DNA of 64,000 bases from Macrostomum lignano (taxonomy: Eukaryota): assembly GCA_002269645.1 (NCBI GenBank), contig NIVC01000106.1, positions 806,001 through 870,000 on the forward strand. Direction: 5' to 3'. The notes below the pieces were generated by a model. The model had not been told where the DNA came from. It saw nothing but the letters and a program-made list of their open reading frames with translations, and did not search any database. This document shows, one piece after another, positions 953-52,226 of this stretch. The translations under genes were made by a program, and so were the position numbers. The first letter of the stretch is position 1; each line of letters opens with the position of its first letter.

Positions 953-1213
953 CTATGCTCACTTGAGTAAACTTCTCCGAACCGTAGTCGATTCGATTCC
1001 AGACTCTGGCACCGACAACCATAAATTCGTCCTTCATGTCAACCAGCCACCAGGGTCCCCGATCACTATTAGACGATTCGACGCATCTTTCTCCATATTT
1101 TATCACGCCATCGCGATTGCCATCGTTTCCAAAGATTGGCAAATTTTTAGCGTCAATTGTTGAAGACATTTTGGCCGACAGGTTTTTTGGGACAATGAAT
1201 TGTTCCGCTCGTC
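953..1213 (-). CDS. Internal exon (phase 1-1, 261 nt) of F-type lectin paralog D
   Basis: tttttag acceptor at 1215-1214 and GTGAG donor at 952. Open frame GRAEQFIVPKNLSAKMSST...GNDGN...CVESSNSDRGPWWLVDM...VWNRIDYGSEKFTQVSIG aligns with exon 2 of paralogs A-C. Downstream exons would lie left of the window; exon 1 is not securely found. Confidence 0.85.
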
Positions 1214-1280
1214 CTAAAAATTAGGGCATTGTTTTAGATATTTTATTCAGTGTGACTTGGCGTGTGTAATTGTATCTTAG

Positions 1281-4200
1281 TGTGTCTCGTTATCTCTGTT
1301 TGTCTTCATGTGTCTGGTGTATCTGTTTGTCTTCGGTTGTCTCGGTGTGTCTGTTTGTCTTCGTGTGTCTCGGTGTGTCTGTTTGTCTTCGTGTGTCTGA
1401 TGTGTCTGTTTGTCTTCGTGTGTCTCGGTGTGTCTGTTTCTCTTCGTGTGTCTGATGTGTCTGTTTGTCTTCGTGTGTCTCGGTGTGTCTGTTTCTCTTC
1501 GTGTGTCTGATGTGTCTGTTTGTCTTCGTGTGTCTCGGTGTGCCTGTTTGTCTTCGTGTGCCTGATGTGTCTGTTTGTCTTCGTGTGTCTCGGTGTGTCT
1601 GTTTATCTTCGTGTGTCTCGGTGTGCCTGTTTGTCTTCGTGTGCCTGATGTGTCTGTTTGTCTTCGTGTGTCTCGGTGTGTCTGTTTATCTTCGTGTGTC
1701 TCGGTGTGTCTGTTTGTCTTCGTGTGTCTGATGTGTCTGTTTTTCCTCGTGTGTCTCGGTGTGTCTGTTTATCTTCGCGTGTCTGATGTGTCTGTTTGTC
1801 TTCGTGTGTCTCGGTGTGTCTGTTTTTCCTCGTGTGTCTCGGTGTGTCTGTGTGTCTTCGTGTGTCTCGGTGTGTCTGTTTGTCTTCGTGTGTCTGATGT
1901 GTCTGTTTTTCCTCGTGTGTCTCGGTGTGTCTGTTTATCTTCGCGTGTCTGATGTGTCTGTTTGTCTTCGTGTGTCTCGGTGTGTATGTTTATCTTCGTG
2001 TGTCTGATGTGTCTGTTTTTCCTCGTGTGTCTCGGTGTGTCTGTTTGTTTTCGTGTGTCTGATGTGTCTGTTTGTCTTCGTGTGTCTCGGTGTGTCTGTT
2101 TGTCTTCGTGTGTCTCGTTGTCTCTGTTTGTCTTCGTGTGTCTCGGTGTGCATGTTTGTATTCGTGTGTCTGATGTGTCTGTTTGTCTTCGTGTGTCTGA
2201 TGTGTCTGTTTGTCTTCGTGTGCCTGATGTGTCTGTTTGTCTTCGTGTGTCTGATGTGTCTGTTTGTCTTCGTGTGTCTCGATGTGTCTGTTTGTCTTCG
2301 TGTGTCTCGGTGTGTCTGTTTGTCTCCGTGTGTCTGATGTCTCTGTTTGTCTTCGGTTGTCTCGGTGTGTCTGTTTGTCTTCGTGTGTCTGATGTGTCTG
2401 TTTGTCTTCGTGTGTCTCGATGTGTCTGTTTGTCTTCGTGTGTCTGATGTGTTTGTTTTTCCTCGTGTGTCTCGGTGTGTCTGTTTGTCTTCGTGTGTCT
2501 GATGTGTCTTTTTGTCTTCGTGTGTCTCGGTGTGTCTGTTTGTCTTCGTGTGTCTCGGTGTGTCTGTTTATCTTCGTGTGTCTCGATGTGTCTGTTTGTC
2601 TTCGTGTGTCTTGATGTGTCTGTTTGTCTTAGTGTGTCTGATGTCTCTGTTTGTCTTCGTGTGTCTCGGTGTGTCTGTTTGTCTTCGTGTGTCTGATGTG
2701 TCTGTTTGTCTTAGTGTGTCTGATGTCTCTGTTTGTCTTCGTGTGTCTCGGTGTGTCTGTTTGTCTTCGTGTGTCTCGGTGTGTATGTTTATCTTCGTGT
2801 GTCTGATGTGTCTGTTTGTCTTCGTGTAAATGTTTGCCTTGGTATGTCTGAATTTGTCTGGTTGTCTCGGTGTCTCTGGATGTGTCTGGTTGTCCTAATG
2901 TGTCTTGTTGTCTTGGTATGTCTGTTTGTGTCTGGTTGTCTCTATGTGTCTGGTTGTCTCTATGTGTCTGGTTGTCTCTATGTGCCTGGTTGTCTCTATG
3001 TGTCTGGTTGTCTCTATGTGTCTGGTTGTCTTCGGTTGTCTCGGTGTGTCTGTTTGTCTTCGTGTGTCTGATGTGTCTGTTTGTCTTCGTGTGTCTCGGT
3101 GTGTCTGTTTGTCTTCGTGTGTCTCGATGTGTCTGTTTGTCTTCGTGTGTCTCGGTGTGTCTGTTTGTCTTCGTGTGTCTGATTTGTCTGTTTGTCTTCG
3201 TGTGTCTCGGTGTGTCTGATTGTCTTCGTGTGTCTGATGTGTCTGTTTGTCTTCGTGTGTCTCGGTGTGTCTGTTTGTCTTCGTGTGTCTCGGTGTGTCT
3301 GTTTGTCTTCGTGTGTCTGATGTGTCTGTTTGTCTTCGTGTGTCTCGATGTGTCTGTTTGTCTTCGTGTGTCTCGGTGTGCCTGTTTGTCTTCGTGTGTC
3401 TCGGTGTGTCTGTTTGTCTTCGTGTGTCTGATGTGTCTGTTTGTCTTCGTGTGTCTGATGTGTCTGTTTGTCTTCGTGTGTCTCGATGTGTCTGTTTGTC
3501 TTCGTGTGTCTGATGTGTCTTTTTGTCTTCGTGTGTCTGATGTGTCTGTTTTTCCTCGTGTGTCTCGGTGTGTCTGTTTGTCTTCGTGTGTCTGATGTGT
3601 CTGTTTATCTTCGTGTGTCTCGGTGTGTATGTTTGTCTTCGTGTGTCTGATGTGTCTGTTTGTCTTCGGTTGTCTCGGTGTGTCTGTTTGTCTTCGTGTG
3701 TCTGATTTGTCTGTTTGTCTTCGGTTGTCTCGGTGTGTCTGTTTGTCTTCGTGTGTCTGATGTGTCTGTTTGTCTTCGTGTGTCTCGATGTGTCTGTTTG
3801 TCTTCGTGTGTCTGATGTGTCTGTTTTTCCTCGTGTGTCTCGGTGTGTCTGTTTGTCTTCGTGTGTCTCGATGTGTCTTTTTGTCTTCGTGTGTCTCGGT
3901 GTGTCTGTTTGTCTTCGTGTGTCTCGGTGTGTCTGTTTGTCTTCGTGTGTCTCGGTGTGTCTGGTTATCTTCGTGTGTCTCGATGTGTCTGTTTGTCTTC
4001 GTGTGTCTGATGTGTCTGTTTGTCTTAGTGTGTCTGATGTCTCTGTTTGTCTTCGTGTGTCTCGGTGTGTCTGTTTGTCTTCGTGTGTCTCGGTGTGTCT
4101 GTTTGTCTTCGTGTGTCTGATGTGTCTGTTTGTCTTCGTGTGTCTCGATGTGTCTGTTTGTCTTCGTGTGTCTGATGTGTCTGTTTTTCCTCGTGTGTCT

Positions 4201-4850
4201 CGGTGTGTCTGGTTATCTTCGTGTGTCTCGATGTGTCTGTTTGTCTTCGTGTGTCTGATGTGTCTGTTTGTCTTAGTGTGTCTGATGTCTCTGTTTGTCT
4301 TCGTGTGTCTCGGTGTGTCTGTTTGTCTTCGTGTGTCTCGGTGTGTCTGTTTGTCTTCGTGTGTCTGATGTCTCTGTTTGTCTTCGTGTGTCTGATGTCT
4401 CTGTTTGTCCTCGTGTGTCTCGGTGTGTATGTTTATCTTCGTGTGTCAGATGTGTCTTTTTGTCTTCGTGTGTCTCGGTGTGTCTGTTTATCTTCGTGTG
4501 TCTGATGTGTCTGTTTGTCTTCGTGTGTCTGATGTCTCTGTTTGTCTTCGTGTGTCTGATGTGTCTGTTTGTCTTCGTGTAAATGTTTGCCTTGGTGTGT
4601 CTGAATTTGTCTGGTTGTCTCGGTGTGTCTGGATGTGTCTGGTTGTCTCTATGTGCCTGGTTGTCTCTATGTGTCTGGTTGTCTCTATGTGTCTGGTTGT
4701 CTCTATGTGCCTGGTTGTCTCTATGTGTCTGGATGTGTCTAGTTGTTTCGGTGTGTCTGGATGTGTCTAGTTGTCTCGGTGTGTCTGGTGTGTCTTGGTT
4801 GCTTTGGTGTATCTGAATGTACACCTGGCTGTGTGTATATGGATGTGTCT
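1281..4850. repeat. TG/TC-rich 27-28-bp minisatellite with embedded 18-bp sub-arrays
   Basis: Units gtgtctgtttgtcttcgtgtgtctcggt / ...gtctgat. All C/V/S/L-rich ORFs here are repeat translations. Confidence 0.95.
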
Positions 4851-5600
4851 GAGTCTGAGTTTGTTTTGGCGCGTCCATTGTGGCTGGATGGGCATCTTGG
4901 TGTGCCCGGGTATGTAGGTTATCAGTGTTCCTGTACCAGCCTTTATAGCTAGCCTGTTTTAAGTCTTCTTCTATGCATAAGAGAATCAAATTGAATCTTT
5001 TTACAGCTTTTATACAGCTGTCCATAGTCTTAGTCGTTTATCAAGAGTGTGTACCGGTATAGTGATTGAGTTGATGCTCACCAAACGGCAATATGGCGGT
5101 AATTGCAAGGCAGAGCAAAGCAAATTGTTGTAGATACATTTGCCTCTAGTAGGAGTTCCGTATTGCTGCGCTTTTTCCTTCAGACAGGAGGAATCTCGAA
5201 AAGTATCAAAACAACTACTAGTATTAAGCACTTGCATAGGCTTTATATGCCGATATTTGAATCGTATTTATACACGAAAACAGGCAACGAGAAACAATTC
5301 GCCTAAGCAGTGCCAATCTCGCCTGATGCAAACCAACCAGACAATGAAATGGCCATGCGGTGCTTTCCCACATCCATCAGACCACCACCAGAGAGGCTGG
5401 CTTTGAGAACAATGGAAATCTTTATTTCTAAACTGATTGACTTGAAAAACTTAATTGTCTAGGATGTTAAAAGCGTTCAGCAGTTTTTGATTGTCTGCTT
5501 CATGAACTGAAAGCTTTACATGTTCCATCTTCACCTACCATTGATTTGCAACTGCTTTACAATGCTATCTCTCTGTCTATATTTGCCTCAATATGTCTGA

Positions 5601-5915
<315 letters not shown>

Positions 5916-6529
5916 TAAATTTTAAACTCATCGGTGGAATGTCAGATGTCAAGGCTCATTGGGGGAATCGCTTAGATGTCATGGCTTACTGAGGGAATTG
6001 CTGAGATGTCAAGGCTTACTGAGGGAATTGCTGAGATGTCAAGGCCATATGGGGGATGGCTGAATTGTTGGGCGGTTATTGTGCGATTGTCAGATAGCCA
6101 AGTAGTAGGGCTCAAGTAGCTCATTTAATTCACATAATGAAAGAGTACACGTAAGTGATGCTGATTTCTGCTAAAAGAAAATACCTGCGTATTTATTAAA
6201 GGTTTTATTCTTTGAGCTAGGCGAATAAAGAGGGGTCTAAGGCCGTCAGGGATTGGCAGAATGAGCTCCTCCTGCGGACCAGAATAAACCTAGGCCAATG
6301 ACGATACGCACTAAGAGTTTTTGCTTGAAAAGATGAGCACAATTTGCTAATTGAGAAAGGGAAAGAAAAAGGAGAAAGGGTAGACAAGCGCTGAACTGCT
6401 AAAAAGCCACCCGGAGGGGGGTTAAATGGCTAGTCTAATCTTCTAATCTTCTAATCTAAATATACTAAATCCAAATATACTAAATCTCTAAGATCTGTCT
6501 GTCCGTCCACCTATACTAAATCTCTAAGA

Positions 6530-6575
<46 letters not shown>

Positions 6576-11800: not shown

Positions 11801-12949
11801 AAGGGGGTTAGGTTGTTGAGCGATTGTCAGATCGTCAAGTAGGACGGCTCAAGTAGCTCATTTAATTCAGATAATGAGTGATGCAAACACACAAGTGATG
11901 CTGATTTTTGCTAATAGGAAATATCAGCGTATTTATTAAAGGTTTGGTTCTCCGAGTTAGGCTAATAAAGAGGGGTCTAACTCTAAGGCCGTCAGGGATT
12001 TACACATTGAGCTCCTGCTGCGGACCAGAATATGCCCAGGCCAATGACGATATGCACTAAGAGTTTGATTGAGAAAGGGTTTTAGGCTGATGTCGGAAAC
12101 TTTTTTGGCTGGTGAAAGTTTTGATTCATGGCAATTTATCTTTGCCAAAAATCAGAAAAAGTAATTTTTGATCAATGGAAATCAACATTTTGGATAATTA
12201 GTAAGGTTATATACTCTTGGGCCAAAATAAAAACCACTTTCATTTTAAATGCTGGGGTGTCATTTTTAAGGCCACCCAGCGGGGGGCTAAATGGCTAGTC
12301 TAAATATACTAAATCTTTAAGGTTTTTATGATTGTTAGTCTGTTTTTTTGTTTGTCTGTCTGTCTGTAACACTCTAGAGATTGAACCGATTGACCAATTT
12401 TGATCGCGTTTTCGCCAAACGATTTTTAATTATCTGGAAAGAAGACAGTCAAAATTTCTTGTATCTGCTTCAAAGCTAAAGGTATTAAATATTCAAAAAG
12501 CGAGTTTTCATAATGCTTTTAATGGGAAGCCAAACAAGGTTGAATTCTTGACTGGCTGAATTTCAATTTCAATTCCAATAATGATTGCATCATAACTGGG
12601 TACTGAATATTCTCGTTATAAACTGACTAAACTGAAGGCAGTGTGCCAAGCATTGCGCATGCACTCTGGAGCGAGAGAAATCAGCCAGTGCATTTTAAAA
12701 GTATTTTAACTATTGATGGTGTACAATATTGTATTTTGTAAATTTATAGTCCTTACATCTGTCTATAATTTTCGCTATATGGAACGAAAGCATTTCGCTC
12801 TACAGACTGAATGCCTGAAGGGCCATTGGAGGGGCAGAGTGCAGTGCTGGCTGGGTGCAAAGGTGAGAAAAATAATCAGTGGTCGCGTGAATACATTCAG
12901 GTCATGTGAACCTGTCTGACTGGTAGTGACTCAGCTAACTAATTAATAT

Positions 12950-15003: not shown

Positions 15004-15359
15004 GCCCAGTGGTCTGGCGCGGCGCTCTGGTGTGCCAGCGGCCCAGGCTCGATTCCAAGTGCAGTCACATTAATTTGGGGCTTAATTGAAATCTCGGCTT
15101 GGCTCTGCTCGTGCTATTAACGGCCTTGAGGGCCAACCCCCCAGGGACAGTGAAGTTTACATGCCTAATGATAAATAAGGTTACGGCCGCTGTACACTCC
15201 TGTGTGAGTGTGTACCTGTGCGTATGACTGCGTACGTATCCGCGCGCTTGTGGGCCTGCTCAGGGGAGTCGGCGGAATGGGCAGTAATGCCTCTCGCCGG
15301 TTGTGTGACAATGTCGCTTAAAGCGTGCCAGGATGCACAAGCCCCTACCTCTAATAAAA
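15004..15359 (+). mobile_element. tRNA-derived SINE, copy 1
   Basis: A-box-like gcccagtggtc and B-box-like ggctcgattcc. Body matches five other copies; A-rich tail. Confidence 0.85.
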
Positions 15360-16271
15360 TTCTGTGCCAAAACTTTTCATTTTCAAAGCGATTTGACAAG
15401 GATCTTTAAAACTGTTTAGAGATTATATTATAGATAAAAACGAAATTCTTGTTAGCTCAAAGCATCATCATAGCTTGTTTGATTGCTATACCAAGAATAT
15501 AATTCGCCTTTTCAACATTAGACATGTGAAGCTCCTGAAAAAAAGCTTCGCAAATGAAATCACACTATCGCCACTGTTCGTCAATTCCACACTCTAAATT
15601 TACTCTGTCGAACCTGATTTAGATACTGCAGTTGGCTACTCATGCAGTTTTATACAGAATTATAGTTAAAATTGTTCGAATTCCGTTAGAGTCAGTTTTT
15701 CCCAATTCAAACCCAGGTTAAGCTTCATATTTGAGCAAAATTCAGATCCGGTTGTAAAACTCAAATAAGCAGCTATTTTACTTGTGAGAGTTGGCATCCG
15801 GCATCGAGTTGGTGCAACATGCAAACATTTATCTTGGCGACTGCAAACTCTGATATTTAACACCGATCCAGACGGTGCTGACTAAAAGTTTTCCCAGTGC
15901 GTTCAGTTTTTATGAACACAGCAAAGTGGAGAAACAATCTTATATTAAATTAAAAGTAGTCTGCTAAATCGTTAATCACATTCGGCTCATAATTATTCAC
16001 TTTTCAGACTATAAACGCTGGATATTCTGAAAAGCTCTCCGATATTTCTTATATTCCTGTTCTCTGACCGGAAATCGACTTCTTCATTGATTGGTTATAT
16101 GGATTCGTTGCCTGAACGGCAAGGGGACCCTGCAAATTGCTGTGGCTCATGGGGGAATTGCTGAGATGCCAAGGCTCATGTGGGGAATTGCTGAGATTCC
16201 AAGGCTCATGGGGGAAATTGCTGACAGGTCAAGGCTTACTGGGGGAATTGCTGACAGGTCAAGGGGAATTG

Positions 16272-16650
16272 CTTTTCACCTTCTGGTCCTCCGTAAAGGT
16301 ATGGTGCACCCATCGGGCACATCGCTTGGAGGCTCCAGCTTGTCGTGCAGGATGGTGGCATCCGCTGCCGATGCAGTGCTCAGCAGGTTACTTGCCGGTC
16401 CTCGTCAATCATTCTCTGGACGGTTCTGTTCGGTGACAGCAGAAGCTGCGCGTCTCGTCCGAGACTCGTCATCAAGGCTGCTTCGCCCCCCTTAAACTCA
16501 CTGTACCACCGAGAAACCAGCTGTGGCACGTGAAGGGGCTTAGTCACTGAAAGCAGCACGTATACTTTCAATACACTACTCCTGCGTGAGACCTTTTCGC
16601 GAGTCCTAAAAAGTCATGGCACGAAATTGCCTTGGTTTTTTTGGCAAAGT
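16272..16650 (-). mobile_element. Degenerate mariner transposase 5' fragment (irritans-like)
   Basis: With stops and frameshifts the minus strand reads QFRAMTF*DSRKGLTQE*CIESIRAAFSD*APSRAT / VSRWYSEFK / GRSSLDDESR / MIDEDRQVT / ILHDKL / CARWVHHTFTEDQK. This is the mariner N-terminal HTH region and WVPHEL linker. Confidence 0.8.
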
Positions 16651-16905: not shown

Positions 16906-17133
16906 GTTTTCAAACCTTTATGATTGGTAAGAACAAGCCATTAAAATATCGCCGTCAACACGCGACGTCAGCGATAATCCCATCCAGGAAAAGGATGGTG
17001 ATGCACACGAAAACTAATGAGCTTTAACGGGGTCTTTGAGTGGTGGATCTGGAAAGGAGGCTGCTCACTTTTGGTGTCTGGTTCTGGAACCGACTTAGCT
17101 GCTGTTCTGAACGATTTGCTCAAGTGAGCATCG
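16906..17133 (+). pseudogene. Decayed F-type lectin exon 2 (paralog psiE)
   Basis: ttttaatttcag acceptor and G|GTTAGT donor, phase 1-1 like A-D. Reads GFQTFMIGKNKPLK...MHTKTNEL*RGL*VVDL...GVWFWNRLSCCSERFAQVSIG with two in-frame stops. It is 21-33 nt shorter than the paralog exons. Confidence 0.75.
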
Positions 17134-17155
17134 GTTAGTTATTGCTAATTATTTA

Positions 17156-18100
<945 letters not shown>

Positions 18101-19012: not shown

Positions 19013-19907
19013 CAGGGATTGGCAAACTCCGGCCTGAGGGCCAGATGTGGCCTGCAAAGCCTCTATATCCGGGTCTTGGGTCCTTTGAATCTTCACAATA
19101 GCAATCCGGCCCGCTCAAGGTTTGCGTCTCTTCTCAGCTCTCTTCCCTCACCTATCTCTTCTCATATTCTCCTGTCCTGTCCTCTCCTCTCTCCTGTCCT
19201 CTCCTCTCCTCTCCTCTCTCCTCTCCTCTCCTCTCTCCTTTCTTTTCCTCTCCTCTCCTCTCTTTTCCTCTCATCTCCTCACCTCTCTCCTTTTCTCTCA
19301 TCTCCTCACCTCTCTTCTCTCTTCTCCTCTCATCTCCTCACCTCTCTCCTTTCCTCTCCTCTCCTCATCTCTCTCCTTTCCTCTCCTCTCCTCACCTCTC
19401 TCCTTTCCTCTCATCTCCTCACCTCTCTCCTTTCCTCTCCTCTCCTCACCTCTCTCCTCTCCTCTCCTCTCCTCATCTCTCTCCTTTCCTCTCCTCTCCT
19501 CACCTCTCTCCTTTCCTCTCCTCTCCTCATCTCTCTCCTCTCCTCTCATCTCCTCACCTCTCTCCTCTCCTCTCATCTCCTCACCTCTCTCCTCTCCTCT
19601 CATCTCTCATCTCCTCTCCTCTCTCTTATATTTCGACTCTCCTCTCCTCATTCATCTCCCCTCTCCTCTCTCCTTTCCTATTTTATCTCTCTTCTCGTCT
19701 ACTCTCTTCTCTTTTATTTATTCGCCTCTCCTTTCTTCTATACTCGTATAGTTCTCTTCTCTATTCCCTATCCTCTCTCCCTATAGGCCGCAGTCATCAG
19801 GGACTCCTGGGTGCGTTTCTTTTAGGGGGCCCAGCGAAGCGGACCCAGAAGGGCAGATAGCGCTGTTCTCAATCTGGCCCTTGAGGTAAAAAGTTTGCTG
19901 ACCCCTA
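19013..19907. mobile_element. hAT-type (Charlie-like) non-autonomous element with an internal CT-rich expansion (19130-19790)
   Basis: Left end CAGGGATTGGCAAACT...ggcctgagggccagat; right end atctggcccttgagg...AGTTTGCTGACCCCTA. Imperfect 8-bp flanks cactaaaa / aactaaag. Confidence 0.7.
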
Positions 19908-20429
19908 AACTAAAGCACTAGGCTTAGGCACATTAGATGAAAACTGGAGTGGAATGGGATTGCGAACAACATGAACGATTAAATCAGCTGGTACCCTTAG
20001 CTTCCAAGACTAAAAAAAGCCAAAGCCCAAAAACGGCCGACACTTGTTTAAATTCAAAAAGGGCACTTGCTGGATCATGCTAAAAAGTGTGGGGGGCTCA
20101 AACCCATGCCCCCCCCCCGGTTCCGACACCCCTGTAGAAAGCCACTGGATTTAGGAAGTCATCGTTCATAATCTTTATGCTAAAACTTCATTGAACTTTC
20201 ATTTGCCTTTGCAGAAGCAATGCTGATCGTTTTCGTTGACTGAGTTCATTCAACACGTTCAAGGATGCTATGCTTCAGTTTTTTAAGCCAATTGTAATTC
20301 GCCTCCATTTTGATTGGTTTAGAAACCTTGCATTTAAGATTTGGCCACGTCGCATTTCCGATTTCCTTGCAAGCAACAAAACTGCATTTTCTAAATAATT
20401 TCTTCAAATAGCTGGGATAAATTTGAAAA

Positions 20430-23400
20430 ATGAAAACGTTGAATTTAATTCTGCTTCTGCTTTTCTGCTTCCAGTTCGCTGAAAATGTGCTTGGTAAGAA
20501 TTGATTCGATTTAGAAAAGCTGTACTTTTTGTCTCAGAACTCTGTTATTAGTGAACTGCTATTAGTAGACTGCTATTAGTAGACTGCTATAAGTAGACTG
20601 CTATTAGTAGACTGCTATTAGTAGACTGCTATTAGTAGACTGCTATTAGTAGACTGCTATTAGTAGACTGCTATAAGTAGACTGCTATTAGTAGACTGCT
20701 ATTAGTAAACTGCTATTCGAATATAGGTATAACGCCTATTGATTTTAACTCTGTATTTTATGAATCCGTGCTTTTAATAGCCTAACATAGAGTATAATTT
20801 GTTAGACTTGACCAGAGTTAGGCTAAATTGGAAAATGTTCCGTCAAATGTCTGCAGGTGCCGAGAAAATCACCGTTCCCAAAAACAAGCCCGCTAAGCAG
20901 TCTTCGAAGTTCCACTCAAACGACGACCCAGCCCTGGCCAACAACGGAAACACCGGCGGCTCCCTTGTGCGCCTGTCGAACTGCTTCGAATGCGCGAACA
21001 ACGACCCGCTACCCTGGTGGATGGTTGACATGGGCGAGATCTACTTTGTCCACCAGGTGAAGGTGTGGAACAGAATCAACTGCTGTGCTGACCGGTTTCG
21101 GCAGGTTAGCGTTGGTAAGTTGCTGCTGCGAAGCTTAGATTGCTGCATGGCTTTGAGATAGATCGATCGGGCAAAAAACTACAGTAAATAGAGAAAAATT
21201 TACTGGTGTTGTATCAAGAAATGTTTTGCTAAGCAAAAGCAAGCTACAGGGCAACGATGAAAATACATGTTTGTTAACGCTTCATGTTCAACGGTATAAA
21301 CGGAGATATAGAACACTCAGATTTACTCAAACTCAGAAACATTGCACAAACAAAAAATACTCGTATTTATATTCAATCAGAAAATGTTTGTGGAATTCCC
21401 AAGTATGTGCCAAAAAGACTTTTGATAGGGCATTACTTTACTTTGCAGCAGAGGGCTTTCAGGGATGAAATGCTATATGCGTTTGAGCTTTAAATGGATG
21501 CTTGTAAGAGGTCCCTTTCATGTAGTAACACGTGCGATGGTCTAAAATTGCGGTAGCATTGTCCATGCATGTTGCCGATTCTCTGTACGGGGTCCGAATT
21601 CGGGCTTCAAAGCAGCTTATCCATGACGAGCTTCACGATCTGAGCTTCACGGGCTGAGGACTTCACCTTGCAGTCCACCTTTCTGGACCTCAACAGAACG
21701 GGAGTGTCCCAGGAGGTGCAAGGTGGCAGTCCGATGGGAGAACATGATGTACATGATCAAGCGAGTGAGTTGCTCGTGCGGGCCACTTGATTAAAAAGCA
21801 CGTTATCGAAGGTATCAATTTTTTTCGTAAAAACGACTGTCGAGCACCGCGCGTTTCAATTTGTTGACAATGGCGTGCAATGCGATATCGATAGAACGGT
21901 CCAGACCGAAAGACGCGCCGGTTGCAGGAGGGGGAGACGCCAGAGCCCATCCGTTCTATCAGTTTAACAGTAGAAAGACCACGCTATTTTTCCACATGGG
22001 GAAAGACCATGGGATCCCGGCTCGTCAGGGCCGCGTGGTGGCACTCCGTTGAATTCGAAGGTCCCGAAGGTCGTCCAGACAGAGCTGAATGCTGAACATG
22101 GTGCAGGACCATTGTATAATACGCAGACATACCTGGTTTGGTCCTTGATAGAAAAATCACGATGTTGAGGGTGTCAGCTCGTCGGGGCCGCGTGGTGGCC
22201 CTCCCTTAAAGGTTCCGAAGGTCGCCTGTATGTCTACAGGTCAGCCTAGAGGGTCACCATCGTCCATTTCATTCACCGATTATGTCTACTGACTGAATGC
22301 TGCATGCAGAAGAGGATTCTTCCACTTCAGTTTTGGAAACGCAGCCGTCTCTACGATACCGATCGGGTGCTTTGGTTGAAGGTCCCGACGGTCGCCGCCG
22401 ATGCTCCAGACGGTGATGAAGGGGACCCTGGTGTCTGAGATGCTGACGTCCCTGCGACTGATATGCATAGTTTTTTGAGCCGACGTCGTTTCATGATGAG
22501 ATTTTGTGAGCAGAAATTTTTTGCCAATGTTGTTGGTTTTTTCCACCAGACACCCCGAGGAGAATCGCTGAATATCTCGACGATGCCGATTTTTCGTGAT
22601 TCTCGAAGTTGCTTTATCAAATAGAGTGGAAAGTTTTAGCCCGCGTTCTGGATTTTCATGGAAATTGGTTGAATATTCTTGGAGATATAGACAAAGGAAA
22701 AATGTGTGTATTTAAAATACACCCCCATGGTCTTTCTACTGTTAACGAAGAAGAGCGTCAGATTGATATGGCGGTAATTGCTTTGGCAGAGTGTTAGCCT
22801 CCCTTCCATGGTTTTGAGATAAAGACAATCGTGGCTTCCTGCCAGCCACGGTTGCTGAGGAGGTCGAGGAATCTGTCATTTTCACTGCTGTTGCTGCTTG
22901 AAGATTTTTTCAAGAGTCGAAGAGTTTACTGCCAATAAAATCCTCTCTCTATTCCAGGTGTGGCTAAAAATCCCATCGTATGGACGTCCTTCAACCAGGA
23001 CCTGTTCGAACGCTGCGACTACTGGCCCGGGGTGGCCACGGTGGCTGACAATCCCATCGTGTTCACCTGCCCCAGCCCCATCGGAGGCAGGTACCTGGCA
23101 GTGTACAAGAACACCAGCGGACTGAGCGACGGGAGTGCCAGGCTGCACTTTTGCGAGACTGACATCCTTGCAGGTTAGATGGGCCTTTGTAGCTTTGGTA
23201 GTTTTTTTATATTATTCTGGCAGTTTAAATACAGAATTAGAAAATTCTAACAAAAGAAGCGTCTCTCCAGTCAATAAAAAATCACTTCTGAAATCTATGC
23301 AGAAAAAAACCTGAATTTTGCACCACGGATGTCTTCAGATACTAATCACAGTTACATAGTTTTGATAGAGCTGATTGATGGGCAACTCGGGCCACTGCAG

Positions 23401-24183
23401 AGGCAGATTCCAGCTAATGTCTTCATGAGGAGTGGTTCCTCGAGATTCTGGATTTGTCGCTGCACTACCTGTAAATATAAAATAAGCTGACATAAAAGAC
23501 AAGCATGTGTCACCCAAGGACTACTAGACTAGAAGGACGCAACACTTGAAAATCGTGCAAAAATGACTGAAGGCTGATAATTAAAATGTCTGTATCTCCG
23601 AATCGATTGCATGTTGAAGGTTACTTTTTTCGACAGATTGTTCAGATTTTTGTCCCCTACTGAGTAAGTAAGTTTAGTGTCCCACTGGATGTAGATGCTA
23701 GGAAAGACTGTACAATGGAGACCCTCTATTTTCGGGCGTTTGGTATTCAAATCGTTAAGTTTAGGGACCAAATGATGAAGGTAGTGAAAATCTTAAACGC
23801 AATTTTTTGTGAAAATTTTTTTTCAAAAATATTGGCACTTCGATCTATAGTTCGCTCTTTTCTAATACAACCTACGAGCGTAAAGTTATAAAAACATATT
23901 TTTTAATAAAAAATTTTCAGTCCTAAAGCCGTCCATGATCTCTTTCGAGGCTAAGGTCATTCCGCCAAGGTTCTCAACGAAGCCAACCGACTCGCAGCTC
24001 GATGGCTCTCCAATTGCTGCCAAGTTGAACATCGCCTGCCTGCGTGAGTGCGGCAGCCACCCAATGTGCCTCTACACTTTGTACAAGCAGGGCAACTGCT
24101 GGCTGTTCTCATCTGGCAGCATCTCCGATAGCTTCATCAGCATCCTGAGCGGTGGAGATGCCAAGTTCATGCAGCTGAACTAA
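20430..24183 (+). CDS. Secreted F-type lectin + PAN/Apple-domain protein, paralog A (266 aa)
   Basis: Exons 20430-20493, 20857-21114, 22958-23173, 23921-24183 (801 nt, all introns GT-AG phase 1). Signal peptide MKTLNLILLLLFCFQFAENVLG. FTLD motifs QSS..NNGN..C..PWWMVDM..WNRINCCADR..C..CPSPIGGRYL..LHFCETDI. PAN motif CLRECGSHPMC..CWLF. Confidence 0.92.
20547..20717. repeat. 14-bp minisatellite (attagtagactgct) in lectin A intron 1
   Basis: Direct reading. Confidence 0.92.
21560..22240 (-). mobile_element. Degenerate non-LTR retrotransposon reverse transcriptase fragment in lectin A intron 2
   Basis: Across frameshifts: RGPDEL / LSTVKLIERM / FGLDRSIDIALHAIVNKL / TFDNV / EQLTRLIMYIMFSHRTATLH..VEVQKGGLQGEVLSP / KLVMDKLL. 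This is the colinear order of LINE RT motifs. Confidence 0.6.
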
Positions 24184-26099
24184 TTAGCAATCTGTATATT
24201 CCTGTATCAATGCGTTTGCATGGATATTTTTTACACTCACATCGTTACACGTTACACTCACATCGGCCGAATTGCATGGTTTGTTCCGCATGGGATCCTC
24301 GGGGCAAGCCTCTTCTTCGCTTGGCAGTGATGGCAGAGCATCATCGTTACCGCATTCAATGAATCGGATGAACTCCATCAACTCGTTCATTCATTCGCCT
24401 CGATGACAATCGAATTCGACCAATTTATCATTCGGATGAGTGGCATGAATAGAGGTTAGGGCAAACAGAAGAAATATGAACATGTATCCTCTGCTGCAGA
24501 GTTCCAGCTTATAAGACCACAGCTTCATTTAACATGTTTCGTCTATGGTAATTTCAGACTGTTCCGCTTAACTTTTCGTTCCAGACGTTTTGTCTATGGC
24601 CATCATTTGGCTTGCGCCAAGTGGAAAATGCCTATGACACAAATCCCTAGAATCACTTAGTGAACAATTCCCGTCTGGGAAGTTGTGTCCTAGCCCTTTT
24701 GTACCGGCCTCGACGCTATGGCAGTTGTGTGTGAAGCGTGACCTCTCGATAATCATACATTGTGCCTAGTCTCACTTACTACTCAGACTCATGCAGATCA
24801 GGGGCTGTAGTGAAATTTTCCTGAGTAAATTTGAGTTTCTATCACTTTGGAAGCGTCTCAGGAACACCTCCTGACTAATACAAAGGTCAATAACTCCGTG
24901 AAGTGTCTGTATGTCGAAGGCTCCAAGACAATCAATTGACTACATACATTTCTTCTTTTTACTCAAAAACACTCTAGTGAAAAAAATTATCTTCAAAGAT
25001 TAGGCGACTTTATTGTCAATTCTCTTTCACAATACGAGGTATCTATATAGGCGCTGGGTATCTATACAAGCACTGGGATTTCTGTAAAGTCTGTTGCGAT
25101 CCTATTCCCAAAAGATTTTTGAGCTTGAAAGTAGCCATTGTTTTTTCCACAATTGCGAACCTTCCATGATTCTTAATACTCGTAGAAAAGGGCTCTTGAA
25201 AATGTTCCTATAGCGCATTGTCCTTACTTGGGGGTTACTGACTTCAAGCAAGCCTATGAGAAACTAAAAGTTCCTGCGAATCCAATTTTATTCAATATTA
25301 ACTATAAAGCGAATCTCCTAAAGAACTTCTTGTTGATTTAAAGTAAGTATGCTCGATTCCAACAAATTCATATCTCTCTCGTATTTCTCAGACGCATCCG
25401 ATTCTGTGTGAGTTTCTTTCTCCCATTTCTAAGAATTCCTTCTGAGTTTGGACAGGCGATGTCGCCAGACGAAATTCTCACGAGTTTGAAATTCTTGCCT
25501 CGCATTGTTTTCAGTTCCAGCTATTGACACTACTAGAATTGGCACTAGTTTGGTTGGTCCAAGCACTAACAGGCTCTAAGAATATCTTCTGACATAACTA
25601 AGGTGGATGAATGGTGCCTTTTATGTCCATTGACATGCATGCAAACTTATACAAGATGGTACAGATTTTATCAGCTAAATATCCCTTTTGAGGCTGTCAT
25701 TCATGACAAGCTCACCCACATAAATCATAAAATAGCTACAAGTTAGATTTGCTGGTGTCATCGCAGATTCACATTTAGATTTTAGTAAAGCTGCACTAAC
25801 TTACTTACTGCGAGTAGTGTGCTTGGGAAAAGTAATTAAAGAGTGTATTTGCTCAAAGCATCTCCGACTGTAAATATTATTGATTGCATAAAGTTTGTCA
25901 GAAAAGTCAAGGCATGCGCAATAATAATAATACTACTCATACACACTCATTCACACGCTCACACAGGGTTTAAAGCGGCCTGAATTTCTAATTGTCAGGC
26001 ATGTACACTCTCTGTGCCTTGGCGGTTGGCCCTCGTGGCTGTGAATCGCACGACAATCCGCCGGCCAATTATTGGTGCATACAAGTCCCAAATGAATTT

Positions 26100-27071: not shown

Positions 27072-28066
<995 letters not shown>

Positions 28067-29003: not shown

Positions 29004-29765
29004 TATAGCTTTTTGCAGCCCATTTGGGCTTACGTGCATTTAATCTAATCCAAGATAGGTTTGCCAATGTAGTGGAGCTTTTGTCTATGGTAGCAAGGCT
29101 GCCACAGCGGCACTTAATTTAGTCCAACAAGCTTCAATTTGGTCCATAGCTTTATTTGCAACTGTTGCGGAGGAGCAAGATCAGCTCCACAATTGTGAAC
29201 CACTCTAGGTTGTCGAACGTATGGCACTTGCTTGTGATCAAAGCACTCAACACAGGTGAACACCCAAAGGACATTGCAAGGTTGCTGAATACAGAAGAAA
29301 GATGGTTTACAGCATCCATCAGCGTGTTGAAACCACTTCTGGCATAGGTCACCTGTGAAAGGTGGCAATCGCCAAGGCAAGTTGCTAGAGACTCAGGTCC
29401 AACTGCTACTTAATGCAATTGAGACGAACCCTTTGTTGACGGAGCAGAAAATGCAGCAGCAGTTGAAAGAACAGTTCCAGTTGGTTATCAGATTTGGACT
29501 ATCAGCAGAGCTCTGGAAAAGCGACTGAAAATTGCTGGTACAGACGCTGACATTCCAGCGGTGCGCAACAACCCTTAGGCGGTTGCGAGAAGGCAAGAGT
29601 TTGCCATTGGCTCACAAGCATTTGGACCAAATTGATGCTTGCTGGACCAAATCGATAGCCGCTGTGGCAGCCCTGCTACCATAGACAAAAGCTTCACTAC
29701 ATTGGCAAACCTATCTTGGATTAGATTAAATGCACGTAAGCCCAAATAAGCTGCAAAAAGCTATA
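29004..29765 (+). mobile_element. Internally deleted IS630/Tc1-mariner-like element with ~143-bp TIRs, copy 1
   Basis: TIRs 29004-29146 and 29623-29765 (tatagctttttgcagcccatttgggc... / ...gcccaaataagctgcaaaaagctata). Interior HTH-like LVIKALNTGEHPKDIARLLN. No DDE domain. Confidence 0.8.
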
Positions 29766-30019
29766 TTGAATTTTCATGAATTATTTGCCTTTGCAGAAAC
29801 AGAGCATATCAAGTCCACTACTGATGGTACATTTAACGTGGTCAAGGATGCTATGCTTCAAATATTTCAACCCAATTATAATTCCCCGTCATTGTGATTG
29901 GTTTAGAGAACATGTATTTAAGTTTTGACACGACGCATTTCTGATTCCCTTTGGAAGCCATTTCCATTTGAAGCATAAAAATTTATTCTGAAAAATCATT
30001 GCTTCAAAAAGCTAGGGAA

Positions 30020-32232
30020 ATGAAAACGTTGCCAATGATCTTCAATTTAAGTCTGCTGCTGGTTTTCTGCTGCGATTTCTGCGCTCAAAAAGTGCTTGGT
30101 AGGTTTGATTTAACCGCGTCTCAGTGTAAGCTGTAACTTTGGTCTCAGGACTCGATATAATGGTGGCTGGGCCTTATCGAGTCAGGGGCAAGTCAGTGGA
30201 GCTGTGACCACCCTGGCGCACTTTAAGCGACATTGTCACACAACCGGCGAGAGGCATTGCTGCCCATTCCGCCGACTCCCCTGAGCAGGCACACAAATGC
30301 TTGGATATACGCACAGGCACTCACTCACACAGGAGTGTACAGCGGCCCTAACTTTATATTATCGTTTTGTCTTGGGGCTTTGGCCCTCAAGGCCGTAAAG
30401 TGCACGAGCAGAGCCAAGCCGAGATTCCAATTTAGCCCCAAACTGATGTGACTGCACTTGGAATCGAGCCTGGGCCGCTGGCGCATCAGAGCGCCGCGCC
30501 AGACCACTGCTGGGCTACGCCCCTCCTAGACTGCTGTTAGTAGAAGCTCGAGATGGGACGTCTAATGAGAAAATATTTCAACTCAGTTTTCTATAAATAG
30601 GTAGCTTCGACAGCTCAAATTGAGATGATACATAAGAATAGGTAGCTTTGATCAGGTTTAATGAACTAGACTAAATAAATAAATATACTGTCATATGTGC
30701 ATCGTCTGCAGGTGCCGAGAAAATCACCGTTCCCAAAAACAAGCCTGCTAAGCAGTCTTCAAAGTACCGCCCAAACGACGACCCAGCCCTGGCTAACAAC
30801 GGCAACACCGGCGGCTCCCTTGTGCGCCTGTCGAACTGCTTCGAATGCGCGAACAACGACCCGCTACCCTGGTGGATGGTCGACATGGGAGAGATCTACT
30901 TTGTCCACCAGGTGAAGGTGTGGAACAGAATCAACTGCTGTGCTGGCCGGTTTCGGCAGGTTAGCGTTGGTAAGTTGCTGCTGCGAAGATTTTTTAATCC
31001 ATTGTTTTACATTAACTACGAGTACATTGCAGCGATGGCAAAAATTTAGGTTTGATTTTTTTCTTTCTCACTAGTGTACATGTATCTTTTACTAATCGAA
31101 ATGCTGAGAGCGGCATAAAGCTTGCATTTTGTGTTGGCATATTGGTAGCAATTTCGAGTATTTTATGTCAGCTCCATCAATCCGAATCAGTTCGACGAGT
31201 CTGACTGGTCAATATGCTATAGACGATGATCTTTTTGAAAGGGCAAGAATCACCTGGCAGGCTGGAGCTCAATGCTTTATGCCTGCCGCTTGAGAGATTG
31301 TTAGTAATTACGAGCGTAATATTAACTTTCCACAAATATTAGCCTGCCTCCAAATTTCCAAAGATTTTTTTATAAGAGACTGATATTCTCTTATGGGATA
31401 GCCTTCGTACTTTGAAGATTCGGGCACCTGGCTCAATTTTTCTGCTTTGCTAACCCCTGAAATATGCCTGCCCAATCAAATCCTTTCTATATTCCAGGTG
31501 TGGCTAAAAATCCCATCGTATGGACGTCCTTCAACCAGGACCTGTTCGAACGCTGCGACTATTGGCCCGGGGTGGCCACGGTCGCTGACAATCCCATCGT
31601 GTTCACCTGCCCCAGCCCCATCGGAGGCAGGTACCTGGCCGTGTACAAGAACACCAGCGGACTGAGCGACGGCAGTGCCAGGCTGCACTTTTGTGAGGCT
31701 GACATCCTGGCAGGTTAGATGGGCCTTTGTACGAGCGTAGCTTTGGTAGTTCCTTCATATAGTGTTCTGGCAGTTCAAATATAGGAACAATGGGCTACAT
31801 CACCGTCACTGAGTGTTACTTGGGCTGATTAATAGGCAACAAGATTAAGACGCGCCGGTAGATACTGAGCTACCGTATTTAATTTAAGTCACACTTATTG
31901 GGTATTTCTAGTTCGCTCTTGACTATCACCTTATTTTATTAAAACATATTCTTAAAAATTAAATTTCAGTCCTAAAGCCGTCCATGATCTCGTTCAAGGC
32001 CAAGGTCATTCCGCCAAGGTTCTCAACGAAGCCAACCGACTCGCAGCTCGATGGCTCTCCGATTGCTGTCAAGTCGGACATCGCCTGCGTGCGTGAGTGC
32101 GGCAGCCACCCAATGTGCCTCTACACTCTGTACAAGCAGGGCAACTGCTGGCTGTTCTCATCTGGCAGCATCTCCGATAGCTTCATCAGCATCCTGAGCG
32201 GTGGAGATGCCAAGTTCATGCAGCTGAACTAA
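30020..32232 (+). CDS. Secreted F-type lectin + PAN/Apple-domain protein, paralog B (271 aa)
   Basis: Exons 30020-30098, 30712-30969, 31498-31713, 31970-32232 (816 nt, phase-1 GT-AG introns). Exons 2-4 differ from A at about 26 of 737 nt (hand count). Confidence 0.92.
30204..30523 (-). mobile_element. tRNA-derived SINE, copy 2 (lectin B intron 1)
   Basis: Reverse complement begins ggggcgtagcccagcagtggtc...ggctcgattcc. Same body as the other copies. Confidence 0.85.
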
Positions 32233-32784
32233 TCATCAAATATTCGGGAAAGTTGTGAAACAAGCTAAACTGAACTCAAATAATACTCGTAAAACAGCTT
32301 TTTAAAGTTTCAGGTGAAATCTAAAGCCAGCGCGATAATAATTATTTTAAAAAAGCTACTGTTTTAAATGATGTGACTAAAATAAAATAATTATTTCCCA
32401 ATTAGTTAACGTGTAACACAGATATTAGAATAACTAGATGGTCCACTCAGCACATTTGCGCCTTTTAGCTACTTTCAGTTCAGTAGTAAGTCAAACTGAA
32501 GAATTTTAATGTATTTTTAAACACAAGGATTATTCTTTAATACCTGAAGAACAAGAACCTTCAGGCCTCAGACTCCATACAGAAACCTCTACCTTTTTTC
32601 CCTAGCCAGCAAAAGCAGGAAATTTCATTGTTCGCAGGAAACAGAAAGAATATTTTGATGTGGTCTTTCAACTTCTTAAAAATTATTTCGAAAAATAAGA
32701 TATGGGTTTGAAGAACTGCCTGCAGAAAGAACAACGCTATTAAATAGCTTTATATATACAGTAATAGCACTACGAGGTAGAACT

Positions 32785-33088: not shown

Positions 33089-33718
33089 GGCAGGTCAAGA
33101 GAAGGAGTAAGGAAAAAAGAAACAATTTCTTTATTTTTAATTAAGTTCTGACGATTGAGATATATTGTGAACTAAGCTAGTGCCAAGAAAACTGAAAACT
33201 TACTCGCTAATCTTCTTTGCAGCGAACACCGGCAAACTTCCAGCAAAATTTGCAGCCAGCTTTTGAAAGCAGTAAAGCGGAGTGTGGATCCACCGTAGAC
33301 CCTTGAGTTTGCCAAAGAGTTTCTTGTTCATATAAGGCTTTTCAGGTAACCATGGTTTCTAGCGTAAGCAGGATGCCTTACTTTAAGCATCAGTAAAGCG
33401 TTGCATTTTCGTGCTCACTTCTATCAACAATGCATCTTTGTCATTTGAGTTTCTGCCTGTGAGAGTCTGCTTCTGAGAGAAACAATGGGTGAATGGCTCA
33501 CTGAGCATGTTAAGAGCCAGGAAAAGCACTTGTAAGTACTTGGTTGTAGTTAAAGGCTCAAGTTTTCCTCTTAAGACTCTAAGCCACTAGCTGCAGCTTC
33601 AGGAGAGGTTTAGATTCTTTTTAAGCAGAATTTCTTTCCAAATTTTCTGTAGACATTTTTTCTCTAAATTTTACTCAATATTTTCCAAGAAGAATTGCTA
33701 GTTCGTAAAATAAACGCG

Positions 33719-35447
33719 ATGAATAGGCAACAATACAAGTTCGACGCGAATTCTTTCTTTATCGTTTTCATCATCTGCTTGTTGAGATGCTCAATCACTA
33801 CCGGTAAGGCAAACTTATTTGAGAATTCTAAAGGTGGTTTCATCATCAATTAATACTCTGAGAATGCATTCTCTAATTCTAATTGAATTTCTCAGCTCCC
33901 ACCGTGCCGAAAAACTTACCGACCAAGATGTCGTCTTTGTACGAGGCGCCATCGAATTCTGCCTATGGCTACAACGGCAACACTAATGGAGTTTACAATC
34001 CATCCACTCAGTGCTTCGCTACTAGCAACACCGACTTTAGTCCCTGGTGGATGGTGGACATGGGAAAGGACTACATTGTTTCTGGTGTTCGAGTGTGGAA
34101 TCGAGTCGATTGCTGCGCTGAACGGTTTAGACTGATCACTGTTGGTGAGTGGCAGCTGATTCCATTTGGTTTTTATTGACGATGTTGTTCACCTTGAGAG
34201 TTTTCAACCGCATCCAATCCAAGGAGTCACCTCGAATCCGTCCGCGTGGAACAGCGCAGATCGCAACCTGTTCAGCAAGTGCTTCGATTGGCAGGGAGTA
34301 GCCGCGGCCGTTGACAATCCACTGAGCTTCTCTTGCAATCAACCGACTGTAGGCAGGTACCTGGCTGTGTTTAAAAACACGAGCGGACAGACTGGAGACG
34401 TCATTGTGCTGACAATGTGCGAGATCGACATCTACTGTAAGTTCAACACAACCAGGGTGGCGCAGTTCTAGGCAGTTTTATTGGGAGATGGGTCTTTATT
34501 GGAAGATGAGTTTTTATTGGAAGATGGGTCTTTACTGGGAGATGGGTCTTTACTGGGAGATGGGTCTTTACTGGGAAATAGATCTTTAATGGGAGATGGG
34601 TCTTTACTGGAAGATGGGTCTTTACTGGGAGATGGGTCTTTACTGGGAGATGGGTCTTTACTGGGAGATGGGTCTTTATTGGGGGATAGGTCTTTATTGG
34701 GGAGTTAGGTCTTTATTGGGGGATAGGTATTTGACTTTGACTCTTTATTGGGGGATAGGTCTTTATTCGGAGACGGGTCTTTATTGAGAGAGGGGTCTTT
34801 ATTGGGGATAGGTCTTTATTGGGGGATACATGCGTAGGTCTTTATTGGGGGATAGGTCTTTATTCGGAGACGGGTCTTTATTGAGAGAGGGGTCTTTATT
34901 GGGGATAGGTCTTTATTGGGGGATACATGCGTAGGTCTTTATTAAGGGATAGGTCTTTATTCGGAGAAGGGTCTTTATTGAGAGATGGATCTCTAATGGG
35001 CTTTAGTACCAAGGGGCGCCAGCACGAAGGGTCTTTAGCACCAATAAGGGGCGCCAACACTTAAAATGAAAATGTTGTTTCAAGACCATCCAGTCAATAT
35101 TCAGCTATTCCGTCAGGGACCAGATGTACAAGTTCGTACATATAACCCAGGCAGAAGGCTAACAAAACGCTCGTGAATCGCTTCCAGACAAAGATCCATC
35201 GTCCGGCGTCTTCAAGACTACTCTGCCAAGCTTCTCAGCGAGCTCGACTAGCCTGGTGGCTTCAACCTCCGCCAGCACAGACGTGCATTGCACCATCATC
35301 TGCGCCGCCAAAACTGAGTGCTTGTATATTCTGTTCCAATCAACCACACTCAATTGCTGGCTGCTGTCATCGTCCACCGCTCCAGACAATTTGCGCATCG
35401 AGTATAACAATCCGGATGCTAAATTCTTGGGATTTATCGAGGAGTGA
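33719..35447 (+). CDS. Secreted F-type lectin + PAN/Apple-domain protein, paralog C (268 aa)
   Basis: Exons 33719-33803, 33896-34144, 34224-34436, 35188-35447 (807 nt, phase-1 GT-AG). Hydrophobic leader FFIVFIICLLRCSITT. WNRVDCCAER, VGRYL, MCEIDI. PAN motif CTIICAAKTEC..CWLL. Confidence 0.9.
34487..34985. repeat. 18-bp minisatellite (gggtctttactgggagat) and derivatives in lectin C intron 3
   Basis: Direct reading. Confidence 0.92.

Positions 35448-41949: not shown

Positions 41950-52226
<10,277 letters not shown>

Follow-up and report, generated by a model that had tools for sequence, protein, structure and literature searches.

We analysed a window of 64,000 nucleotides from the genome of the flatworm Macrostomum lignano (NCBI GenBank assembly GCA_002269645.1, contig NIVC01000106.1, positions 806,001 to 870,000 of the forward strand). 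All coordinates given below are positions within this window. It contains a cluster of genes for proteins that combine an F-type lectin domain (FTLD), encoded in two halves by separate exons, with a C-terminal PAN-like module. Searches by tblastn with genes A and C of the cluster and two paralogs, together with a profile scan of open segments in six frames, detected exactly five copies of the exon encoding the N-terminal half of the FTLD (N-half), denoted D, psiE, A, B and C. The exon for the C-terminal half (C-half) and the exon for the tail were found by tblastn and the six-frame profile scan in three copies each, which belong to A, B and C only.

The spliced open reading frames (ORFs) of A, B and C encode 266, 271 and 268 amino acids, respectively, in four exons each. 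All junctions are canonical GT/AG and every intron is in phase 1. The exons encode, in this order, the leader, the N-half of the FTLD, its C-half, and a linker followed by the tail; each protein comprises a signal peptide, one FTLD and a tail of about 85 residues with four invariant cysteines. In the public gene model P0001 the junctions between exons 2, 3 and 4 are identical to those of gene A, and the same four-exon structure is found in an unlinked paralog with the canonical motif (P0155/P0029; L001 10001–12990; M. lignano NIVC01000249.1), which is a singleton within ±10 kb. A preliminary description of the window had proposed three complete genes with a common four-exon, all-phase-1 layout; splicing reproduces these genes, and both P0001 and the unlinked paralog agree with the layout.

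Hydrophobic leaders, as judged by eye, are present in A, B, C and the candidate first exon of D, and an N-x-S/T sequon is conserved in the C-half of the FTLD. The products of A–C are presumably secreted. A public protein is 99% identical to the spliced product of A, and its UniRef cluster-mate A0A1I8HY10 is an M. lignano 'FTP domain-containing protein'; all full-length database matches are M. lignano entries of UniProt under the same name. Public model P0002 is a fusion of A and B translated through a 15-bp array, that is, an annotation artefact. The features of the cluster are collected in the table.

Table. Exons and sugar-site motifs of the FTLD cluster (window coordinates; motifs list the residues around the His position and the Arg loop).
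Feature	Coordinates	Strand	Content	Evidence
Gene D exon 2	953..1213	−	FTLD N-half; acceptor AG 1215–1214, donor GT 952–951	tblastn, profile
Gene D motif		−	CVE...RIDYGSEK; His replaced by Glu, Cys-Cys lost (YG), last basic residue Lys
Gene D candidate leader exon	5082..5139	−	Signal peptide, MYLQQFALLCLAITAILPF followed by G, then donor GTGAGC; phase 1	leader scan
Upstream exon	16300..16432	+	Donor GTGACA, phase 1	P0001 residues 1–44
psiE	16906..17133	+	Decayed FTLD N-half exon, loop RLSCCSER	tblastn, profile i-E 5e-8
psiE motif		+	~MHT...RLSCCSER
Gene A exon 1	20430..20493	+	Leader, MKTLNLILLLLFCFQFAENVL(G)	gene model, leader scan
Gene A exon 2	20857..21114	+	FTLD N-half	gene model, eel agglutinin alignment
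Gene A motif	E66 GAA 20988–20990; loop 21072–21095	+	CFE...RINCCADR
Gene A exon 3	22958..23173	+	FTLD C-half	tblastn, gene model, profile scan
Gene A exon 4	23921..24183	+	Linker, four-Cys PAN-like module (C219, C223, C229, C239), stop
Gene B exon 1	30020..30098	+	Leader	gene model, leader scan
Gene B exon 2	30712..30969	+	FTLD N-half	gene model
Gene B motif	loop 30927–30950	+	CFE...RINCCAGR; E71 at the His position
Gene B exon 3	31498..31713	+	FTLD C-half	tblastn, gene model, profile scan
Gene B exon 4	31970..32232	+	PAN-like module, stop	gene model, profile scan
Gene C exon 1	33719..33803	+	Leader, MNRQQYKFDANSFFIVFIICLLRCSITT	gene model, leader scan
Gene C exon 2	33896..34144	+	FTLD N-half	gene model
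Gene C motif	A70 GCT 34018–34020; loop 34102–34125	+	CFA...RVDCCAER
Gene C exon 3	34224..34436	+	FTLD C-half	tblastn, gene model, profile scan
Gene C exon 4	35188..35447	+	Ser/Thr-rich linker, PAN-like module (C217, C221, C227, C239), stop	PAN_1 E 0.004

The N-terminal domain of A–C is an F-type lectin domain. The preliminary description had named a profile search with the spliced proteins as a check of this assignment, and the Pfam profiles F5_F8_type_C (PF00754) and F5_F8_type_C_2 (PF22633) indeed score above the cut-off for A, B and C. In a phmmer search of PDB sequences the best match was the eel agglutinin AAA from Anguilla anguilla (1K12, E = 6.8e-11), with FBP32 from Morone saxatilis (3CQO, E = 1.5e-9) and the pneumococcal fucose-binding module 2J1R also among the matches. 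The full-length AlphaFold2 model has a mean predicted local distance difference test (pLDDT) score of 51.5; its top Foldseek match is still 1K12 (5.4e-7).

AAA, the best match in both sequence and fold, resembles A–C in having a single FTLD behind a signal peptide. The published fucose motif is HX24RXDX4(R/K), and the defining triad of basic residues includes His52 (PMC5712786). In the HMMER alignment of the eel agglutinin with gene A, His52 corresponds to E66, Arg79 to R94, Asp81 to N96, Cys82-Cys83 to C97-C98 and Arg86 to R101; Cys50 and the C-terminal structural Cys of AAA have counterparts in the window genes as well. Asp81 normally braces Arg79 by a salt bridge. The triad His is lost in every intact copy in the window, being replaced by Glu in A, B and D and by Ala in C, while the position of Asp81 is occupied by Asn in A and B. 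The first Arg of the motif is kept in A–D, and the last basic residue is Arg in A–C and Lys in D. The vicinal Cys-Cys, whose pairing is predicted, occurs in A–C as well as in psiE; D has YG instead. As a whole, the fucose motif H-X24-R-X-D-X4-(R/K) is absent from A, B, C and D.

Other differences from AAA concern the surroundings of the site. The distance from His to Arg is 26 residues in the eel agglutinin and 27 in the window genes, which thus have one additional residue between the His position and Arg79, and they also possess the C-terminal PAN-like module. The cation (Ca) motif h2DGx is changed by an Asp to Asn replacement in A and B (LANNGN) and in C (GYNGN), and D retains GNDGN; replacements of metal ligands are frequent in FTLDs, according to a review (PMC5712786). 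An extra Cys, unpaired as judged from the sequence, lies one residue past the His position ('CFEC') in A (C67, 20991–20993) and B (C72, 30846–30848) and is missing from C. The number of cysteines in mature A and B is therefore odd, and the extra residue might stay free as a thiol or link two molecules by a disulfide.

As the triad His is replaced, and replaced by an acidic residue in A and B, where the Asp bracing Arg79 is changed to Asn too, classical fucose coordination is probably altered. The motif strings of the preliminary description were confirmed letter for letter for A, B, C, D and psiE. Its statement that His survives only in the dead copy psiE holds in that no intact copy in the window has His, the assignment of His in psiE (~MHT) being approximate owing to indels. 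The motif quoted there, H-x26-R-x-D-x4-R, has the spacing of the eel agglutinin, but differs both from the published formula and from the spacing of 27 found here.

The loss of His is not shared by all M. lignano paralogs. The unlinked paralog P0029 has a fully canonical motif (CVH...RLDCCSGK); His is kept in both P0003 (CTH...RLDNDCAQR) and P0004 (IIH...RLDNSWHKR), and P0016 has Leu at this position. Since unlinked paralogs keep His, and one of them the whole canonical motif, the loss of His in the window cluster is derived.

The cysteine pattern of the tail, C-x3-C-x5-C-L-x(8-12)-C, is invariant in all seven aligned family tails. The tails of A, B and C score below the Pfam thresholds (14.7–17.2 bits vs 21.1 for PAN_3 and 17.4 vs 21.4 for PAN_1); at E ≤ 1, five of the seven tails match PAN_1 and four match PAN_3. 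With 22.9 bits, the tail of the paralog P0016 exceeds the gathering score of PAN_1 (21.4 bits), and homology to it supports placing the tails of A–C in the PAN clan. In the AlphaFold2 model of the tail (core pLDDT 70–83) a helix (32–45) is followed by a hairpin of two strands (52–56 and 59–63). The top Foldseek matches of this model, SML-2 from Sarcocystis, NK1 of HGF and EtMIC5 from Eimeria, are all PAN modules, the matches being non-significant (E 0.27–1.1) and covering about 31 residues. A PDB profile search with the tail yielded the apple domains of factor XI and prekallikrein and SML-2 at E 0.07–0.6, all non-significant. The best PDB match of the tail was a cysteine-containing stretch of the coronavirus spike S2 (E 0.02–0.06, non-significant), which we regard as chance. 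A protein search with the tail profile gave nothing at E ≤ 0.01; it missed the family itself as well and hence is uninformative.

We also considered the Apple domain as an identity of the tail. Apple domains of the factor XI and prekallikrein type have six cysteines, with a third disulfide joining the N- and C-termini. The tails of A, B and C have only four cysteines and lack this third disulfide, so the tail is not an Apple domain. The PAN domain of HGF has four strictly conserved cysteines, C70, C74, C84 and C96 (PMC9249922). The cysteine spacing is C-x3-C-x5-C-x9-13-C in the window tails and C-x3-C-x9-C-x11-C in HGF. In SML-2 (2YIO), EtMIC5 (1HKY) and the N domain of HGF a helix lies on a hairpin and is tied to it by the core cysteines, an arrangement that the tail model would share. 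We conclude that the tail is a putative minimal four-cysteine PAN core with predicted disulfide pairing. Of the label PAN/Apple in the preliminary description, the first part is retained owing to the homology to P0016 and the four core cysteines, and the second is dropped, the cysteines being four and not six. PAN modules mediate protein–protein and carbohydrate interactions (PMC9249922); SML-2 has been crystallised with the galactose analogue 1-thio-beta-D-galactose, as stated in the title of the PDB entry, showing that a PAN module can bind sugar.

To study the distribution of this domain combination, 1.84 billion representative proteins were searched exhaustively with HMMER, which produced 5210 matches at E ≤ 0.001. 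The best 150 of the 5210 were examined, and the counts that follow refer to them. Matches containing both domains comprise five M. lignano clusters only (A/B, P0003, P0016, P0029 and P0004), the rest being multi-FTLD proteins of gastropods, a hemichordate and others. The tail profile has no match in these non-Macrostomum multi-FTLD proteins even at E ≤ 10. All proteins retrieved by word-indexed searches, whether A or the family profile served as query, were from M. lignano. Within the proteins examined, the FTLD and PAN-like architecture looks Macrostomum-specific.

In the 147 closest non-Macrostomum proteins, His is found at or next to the expected position in about 52% of 691 FTLDs, the count being based on spacing and therefore crude. 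By a similarly crude pattern, 68 of the 147 proteins lack any fully canonical FTLD. The His position is seldom occupied by Glu (4 of the 691 FTLDs). Deviant FTLD motifs have been taken to mean that specificity has changed or binding has been lost (PMC5712786, section 8). Atypical motifs were the subject of a survey (Bishnoi 2015) and a biochemical study (Khairnar 2019), both as cited in PMC12221842, and a non-canonical third carbohydrate-recognition domain (CRD) was described in triple-FTLs of lophotrochozoans (PMC8878817). An FTLD motif has been reported in planaria (PMC5712786, section 16), and so the occurrence of F-type lectins in flatworms is expected.

Literature searches that combined Macrostomum with F-type lectin, fucolectin, discoidin, FTP, PAN or apple did not bring up any paper on F-type lectins of this genus, and information on the expression of the genes was likewise looked for and not found. 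There are no lectin, F5_F8 or PAN entries in the supplements of the M. lignano seminal-fluid screen, and the proteins described in the M. lignano adhesion paper have C-type lectin and vWD domains, not FTLDs.

We conclude that the cluster is real and under constraint and represents the expansion, within one lineage, of a lectin family that is well known; it is no new system. The preliminary description had seen here a candidate for an undescribed system. This view goes too far: deviant triads are documented and occur in about half of the 691 FTLDs, planarian FTLDs are known, and the proteins themselves are automatically annotated in UniProt. Prior documentation of the architecture and of the triad variants had been named there as grounds for refutation; the variants are documented, whereas the pairing of the FTLD with a PAN-like module was found only in M. 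lignano among the best 150 matches. Possibly new are this architecture and the rare Glu at the His position.

P0013 from the hemichordate Glandiceps talaboti, one of the closest non-flatworm relatives listed, contains a WSC domain and five FTLDs. One paper links WSC with the terms PAN and Apple. A PAN-like module beside FTLDs may have arisen more than once.

Selection on the cluster was estimated from synonymous (dS) and nonsynonymous (dN) divergence. For A vs B, dS equals 0.10 and dN/dS is 0.27 overall, 0.11 in the FTLD and 0.35 in the tail. For A or B vs C, dS is saturated and dN/dS is 0.29–0.38 overall, 0.23–0.27 in the FTLD and 0.35–0.61 in the tail. These values indicate that A, B and C are constrained genes and not relics. 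The N-half exon is 96% identical between A and B and 53–54% identical between C and either of them; D has 42% identity to A, B and C, the unlinked paralogs being at least as close to them. In the neighbour-joining tree A and B group together and are joined by C, with D placed apart. Hence the duplication that gave A and B is recent, C separated from them earlier, and D dates back as far as the unlinked paralogs. The data fit a tandem birth-and-death history with psiE as a dead copy. This was also the view of the preliminary description, and it is borne out by linked paralogs of differing age (dS of 0.10 for A and B as against the old C and D) and by the stop codons of psiE.

Comparison of A and B (20201–24190 vs 29783–32239) demonstrates 92–96% identity of the exons, while the introns are unalignable except for 20–70 bp at the exon edges. 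The promoter and leader region is 70–77% identical (77% over 170 bp for the promoter), and the 3' flanks are unalignable. Exon identity so far above intron identity points to gene conversion confined to the exons or to introns that turn over very rapidly.

The two remaining copies are incomplete within the window, and a sensitive six-frame profile scan of the window revealed no C-half or tail exons for D or psiE. Exon 2 of gene D has an intact ORF with good splice sites, is 42–44% identical to A and C in tblastn alignments, and is recognized both by the family profile (i-E 3e-27) and by Pfam F5_F8_type_C_2 (E = 1e-4). The leader scan, in which an ATG, a hydrophobic stretch and a phase-1 GT donor were required, identified a candidate exon 3.9 kb upstream on the minus strand that reads in frame when joined to exon 2 of D; the segment 5139..5082 is thus a plausible leader exon of this gene. 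A 55/28-bp minisatellite of about 3.5 kb (1275–4815) occupies the would-be first intron. On the other side, a 19-bp minisatellite of 48.7 copies fills positions 1–926 up to the donor of D; since the donor runs into this array, the remainder of D, if it exists, lies off the window. Both the inverted exon D and the decayed exon psiE noticed in the preliminary description were located, but D may be the 5' half of a complete gene extending beyond the window, not a lone exon.

psiE contains two in-frame stops and is 30 nt shorter on balance; it retains its acceptor and donor and lacks partner exons. Tandem arrays (17157–18100, 18248–18637 and 19168–19712) extend over about 2.5 kb behind it. Residues 1–44 of P0001 map to the exon at 16300..16432, and the protein continues from residue 45 at 20857, the upstream exon being joined directly to exon 2 of gene A. 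P0001 skips the psiE exon, which lies 475 bp downstream of the exon at 16300..16432. Possibly the latter was once the 5' exon of psiE and, orphaned, now contributes to a chimeric transcript.

The window genes can be further compared with known lectins. FBP32 of Morone saxatilis and other multi-FTLD lectins of fish, molluscs and hemichordates belong to the same domain family. Among the matches listed, those nearest to the window genes outside Macrostomum are proteins with several FTLDs from gastropods and one hemichordate, and many of their domains are also off-motif. The FTLD-coding region of MsaFBP32 is split by an intron, as in the window genes (PMC5712786). Multi-FTLD lectins contain at least 2 and in some cases over 30 FTLDs and lack a PAN-like tail, in contrast to the single FTLD and tail of the Macrostomum proteins. 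Replacement of triad residues, as in the window genes, is known for Drosophila CG9095/furrowed and for the third CRD of rotifer triple-FTLs (PMC5712786; PMC8878817). In CG9095 aliphatic residues stand in for two of the basic ones, whereas A–C keep the arginines (with Lys as the last basic residue in D) and differ at the His and, in A and B, at Asp81.

Taking these observations together, we consider it rather probable that the cluster encodes small secreted Macrostomum-specific proteins composed of an FTLD and a PAN core, which function in soluble glycan recognition and whose primary site has no classical L-fucose binding. In these proteins the FTLD scaffold is held by purifying selection, with the structural disulfides, the arginines (those of A–C, with the terminal Lys of D) and the Cys-Cys of A–C preserved. 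At the primary site classical L-fucose binding would be gone, with the ligand preference shifted or narrowed, and the PAN-like module may provide a second binding or oligomerising surface. The preliminary description likewise held that the live members had moved away from classical fucose binding. The replacement of His in all intact copies speaks for this claim; it is a deduction from sequence, and the arginines and Cys-Cys remain in A–C. The roles in immunity, mucus/adhesion or gamete recognition that the preliminary description suggested as possible found no support in the analysis.

Several points weigh against this interpretation. With the arginines (again Lys at the last position of D) and the vicinal Cys pair of A–C in place, the proteins might still bind fucose. 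For A, B and C themselves the PAN assignment falls short of the Pfam thresholds, and the PAN modules retrieved by Foldseek, at E > 0.1, are matched over some 31 residues. The full-length AlphaFold model, with its low mean pLDDT, is too poor for the geometry of the site. The proposed secretion depends on leaders recognized by eye. Transcript-like evidence consists of public gene models only, including the obvious fusion P0002. Finally, the restriction to Macrostomum is based on the best 150 of the 5210 matches, and the library may omit other Macrostomum species and many flatworm transcriptomes.

It is unlikely, in our opinion, that A–C are still ordinary fucose-binding F-type lectins in which the two arginines, the Cys-Cys pair and the loops are sufficient and the residue at the His position merely tunes affinity. 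His52 belongs to the defining basic triad (PMC5712786), Glu brings a negative charge to a hydrogen-bond donor site and is seen there in only 4 of the 691 FTLDs, and in A and B both Asp81 and the Asp of h2DGx are changed as well (ANNGN). Nevertheless, purifying selection acts on the FTLD, and R94, R101 and C97-C98 (numbering of A) are conserved in A, B and C. Moreover, about half of the 691 related FTLDs are without His, so many such domains presumably work, and natural motif variants have been studied whose differences suggest distinct fucosylated-glycan specificities, according to PMC12221842.

More doubtful is a bolder version of the preferred interpretation, according to which the combination of an FTLD with a four-cysteine PAN is an invention of the Macrostomum lineage. 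Here the site with Glu (A, B and D) and Asn (A and B) would accept a non-fucose ligand, such as a cationic or amino sugar or a protein, the unpaired Cys67 of A and B would permit covalent dimers, and the proteins would take part in flatworm-specific recognition, e.g. mate/sperm interaction or surface-mucus defence.

We find it improbable that the FTLD has been co-opted as a non-lectin scaffold with a protein, lipid or matrix ligand, the products being components of mucus, eggshell or glue and not glycan sensors. The fold is common to F5/8 C and CBM32 domains, which have other ligands (Foldseek; PMC5712786, section 16), but the sequence is nearer to true F-type lectins (1k12, 3cqo and 2j1r) than to discoidin domains. 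Similarly, several residues of the sugar and cation sites are changed, yet the conserved pair of arginines and the vicinal disulfide have no known role outside sugar binding. A scaffold function would also agree with the Ser/Thr-rich, mucin-like linker of C and with the binding of proteins, as well as carbohydrate, by PAN modules (PMC9249922).

That the whole cluster is decaying, with A, B and C becoming pseudogenes and the triad changes reflecting loss of function, is hardly credible: psiE is dead, D has no Cys-Cys, the region is full of tandem arrays and the public models are messy, but the ORFs of A, B and C are complete, their splice sites are intact and their dN/dS is far below 1 (0.11–0.38), and 92–96% identical exons amid unalignable introns in A and B are the opposite of neutral decay.

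F-type lectins are models for the diversification of sugar specificity on one fold and serve as reagents for glycan detection. Canonical and His-less paralogs in a small tractable flatworm, for which RNAi and transgenesis are available, constitute a natural series on the triad His and the bracing Asp. The cluster also provides an initial view of the combination of an FTLD with a PAN-like module and, for M. lignano, supplies candidate secreted recognition or matrix proteins that at present are without functional annotation.

The window is rich in repeats and contains about 30 tandem arrays. A repeated element is present in two copies (29114–29745 and 52475–53215) with a helix-turn-helix-like ORF weakly matching Pfam HTH_29; the first copy is located between A and B, and the element is probably a transposon remnant. 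Short interspersed repeats with near-identical ORF translations were found at 15181–15399 (−), 30233–30451 (+), the latter inside intron 1 of gene B, and 47065–47283 (−). Further repeats of this kind occur at 6217–6387 (−) and 11957–12148 (−); one of the translations reads '...SAYRHWP..ILVR.RSS.C.SLTAL'. The neighbouring genes are ordinary housekeeping genes, namely a CKS (Cdk regulatory subunit) gene (37184–37531, minus strand), an exon of the tubulin-tyrosine-ligase family (TTL; 45811–46104, plus strand), Band_7/stomatin exons with a (CAAC)311 array between them (54927–56771, plus strand), and exons of an MFS/SLC22-like transporter (60305–63945, minus strand).

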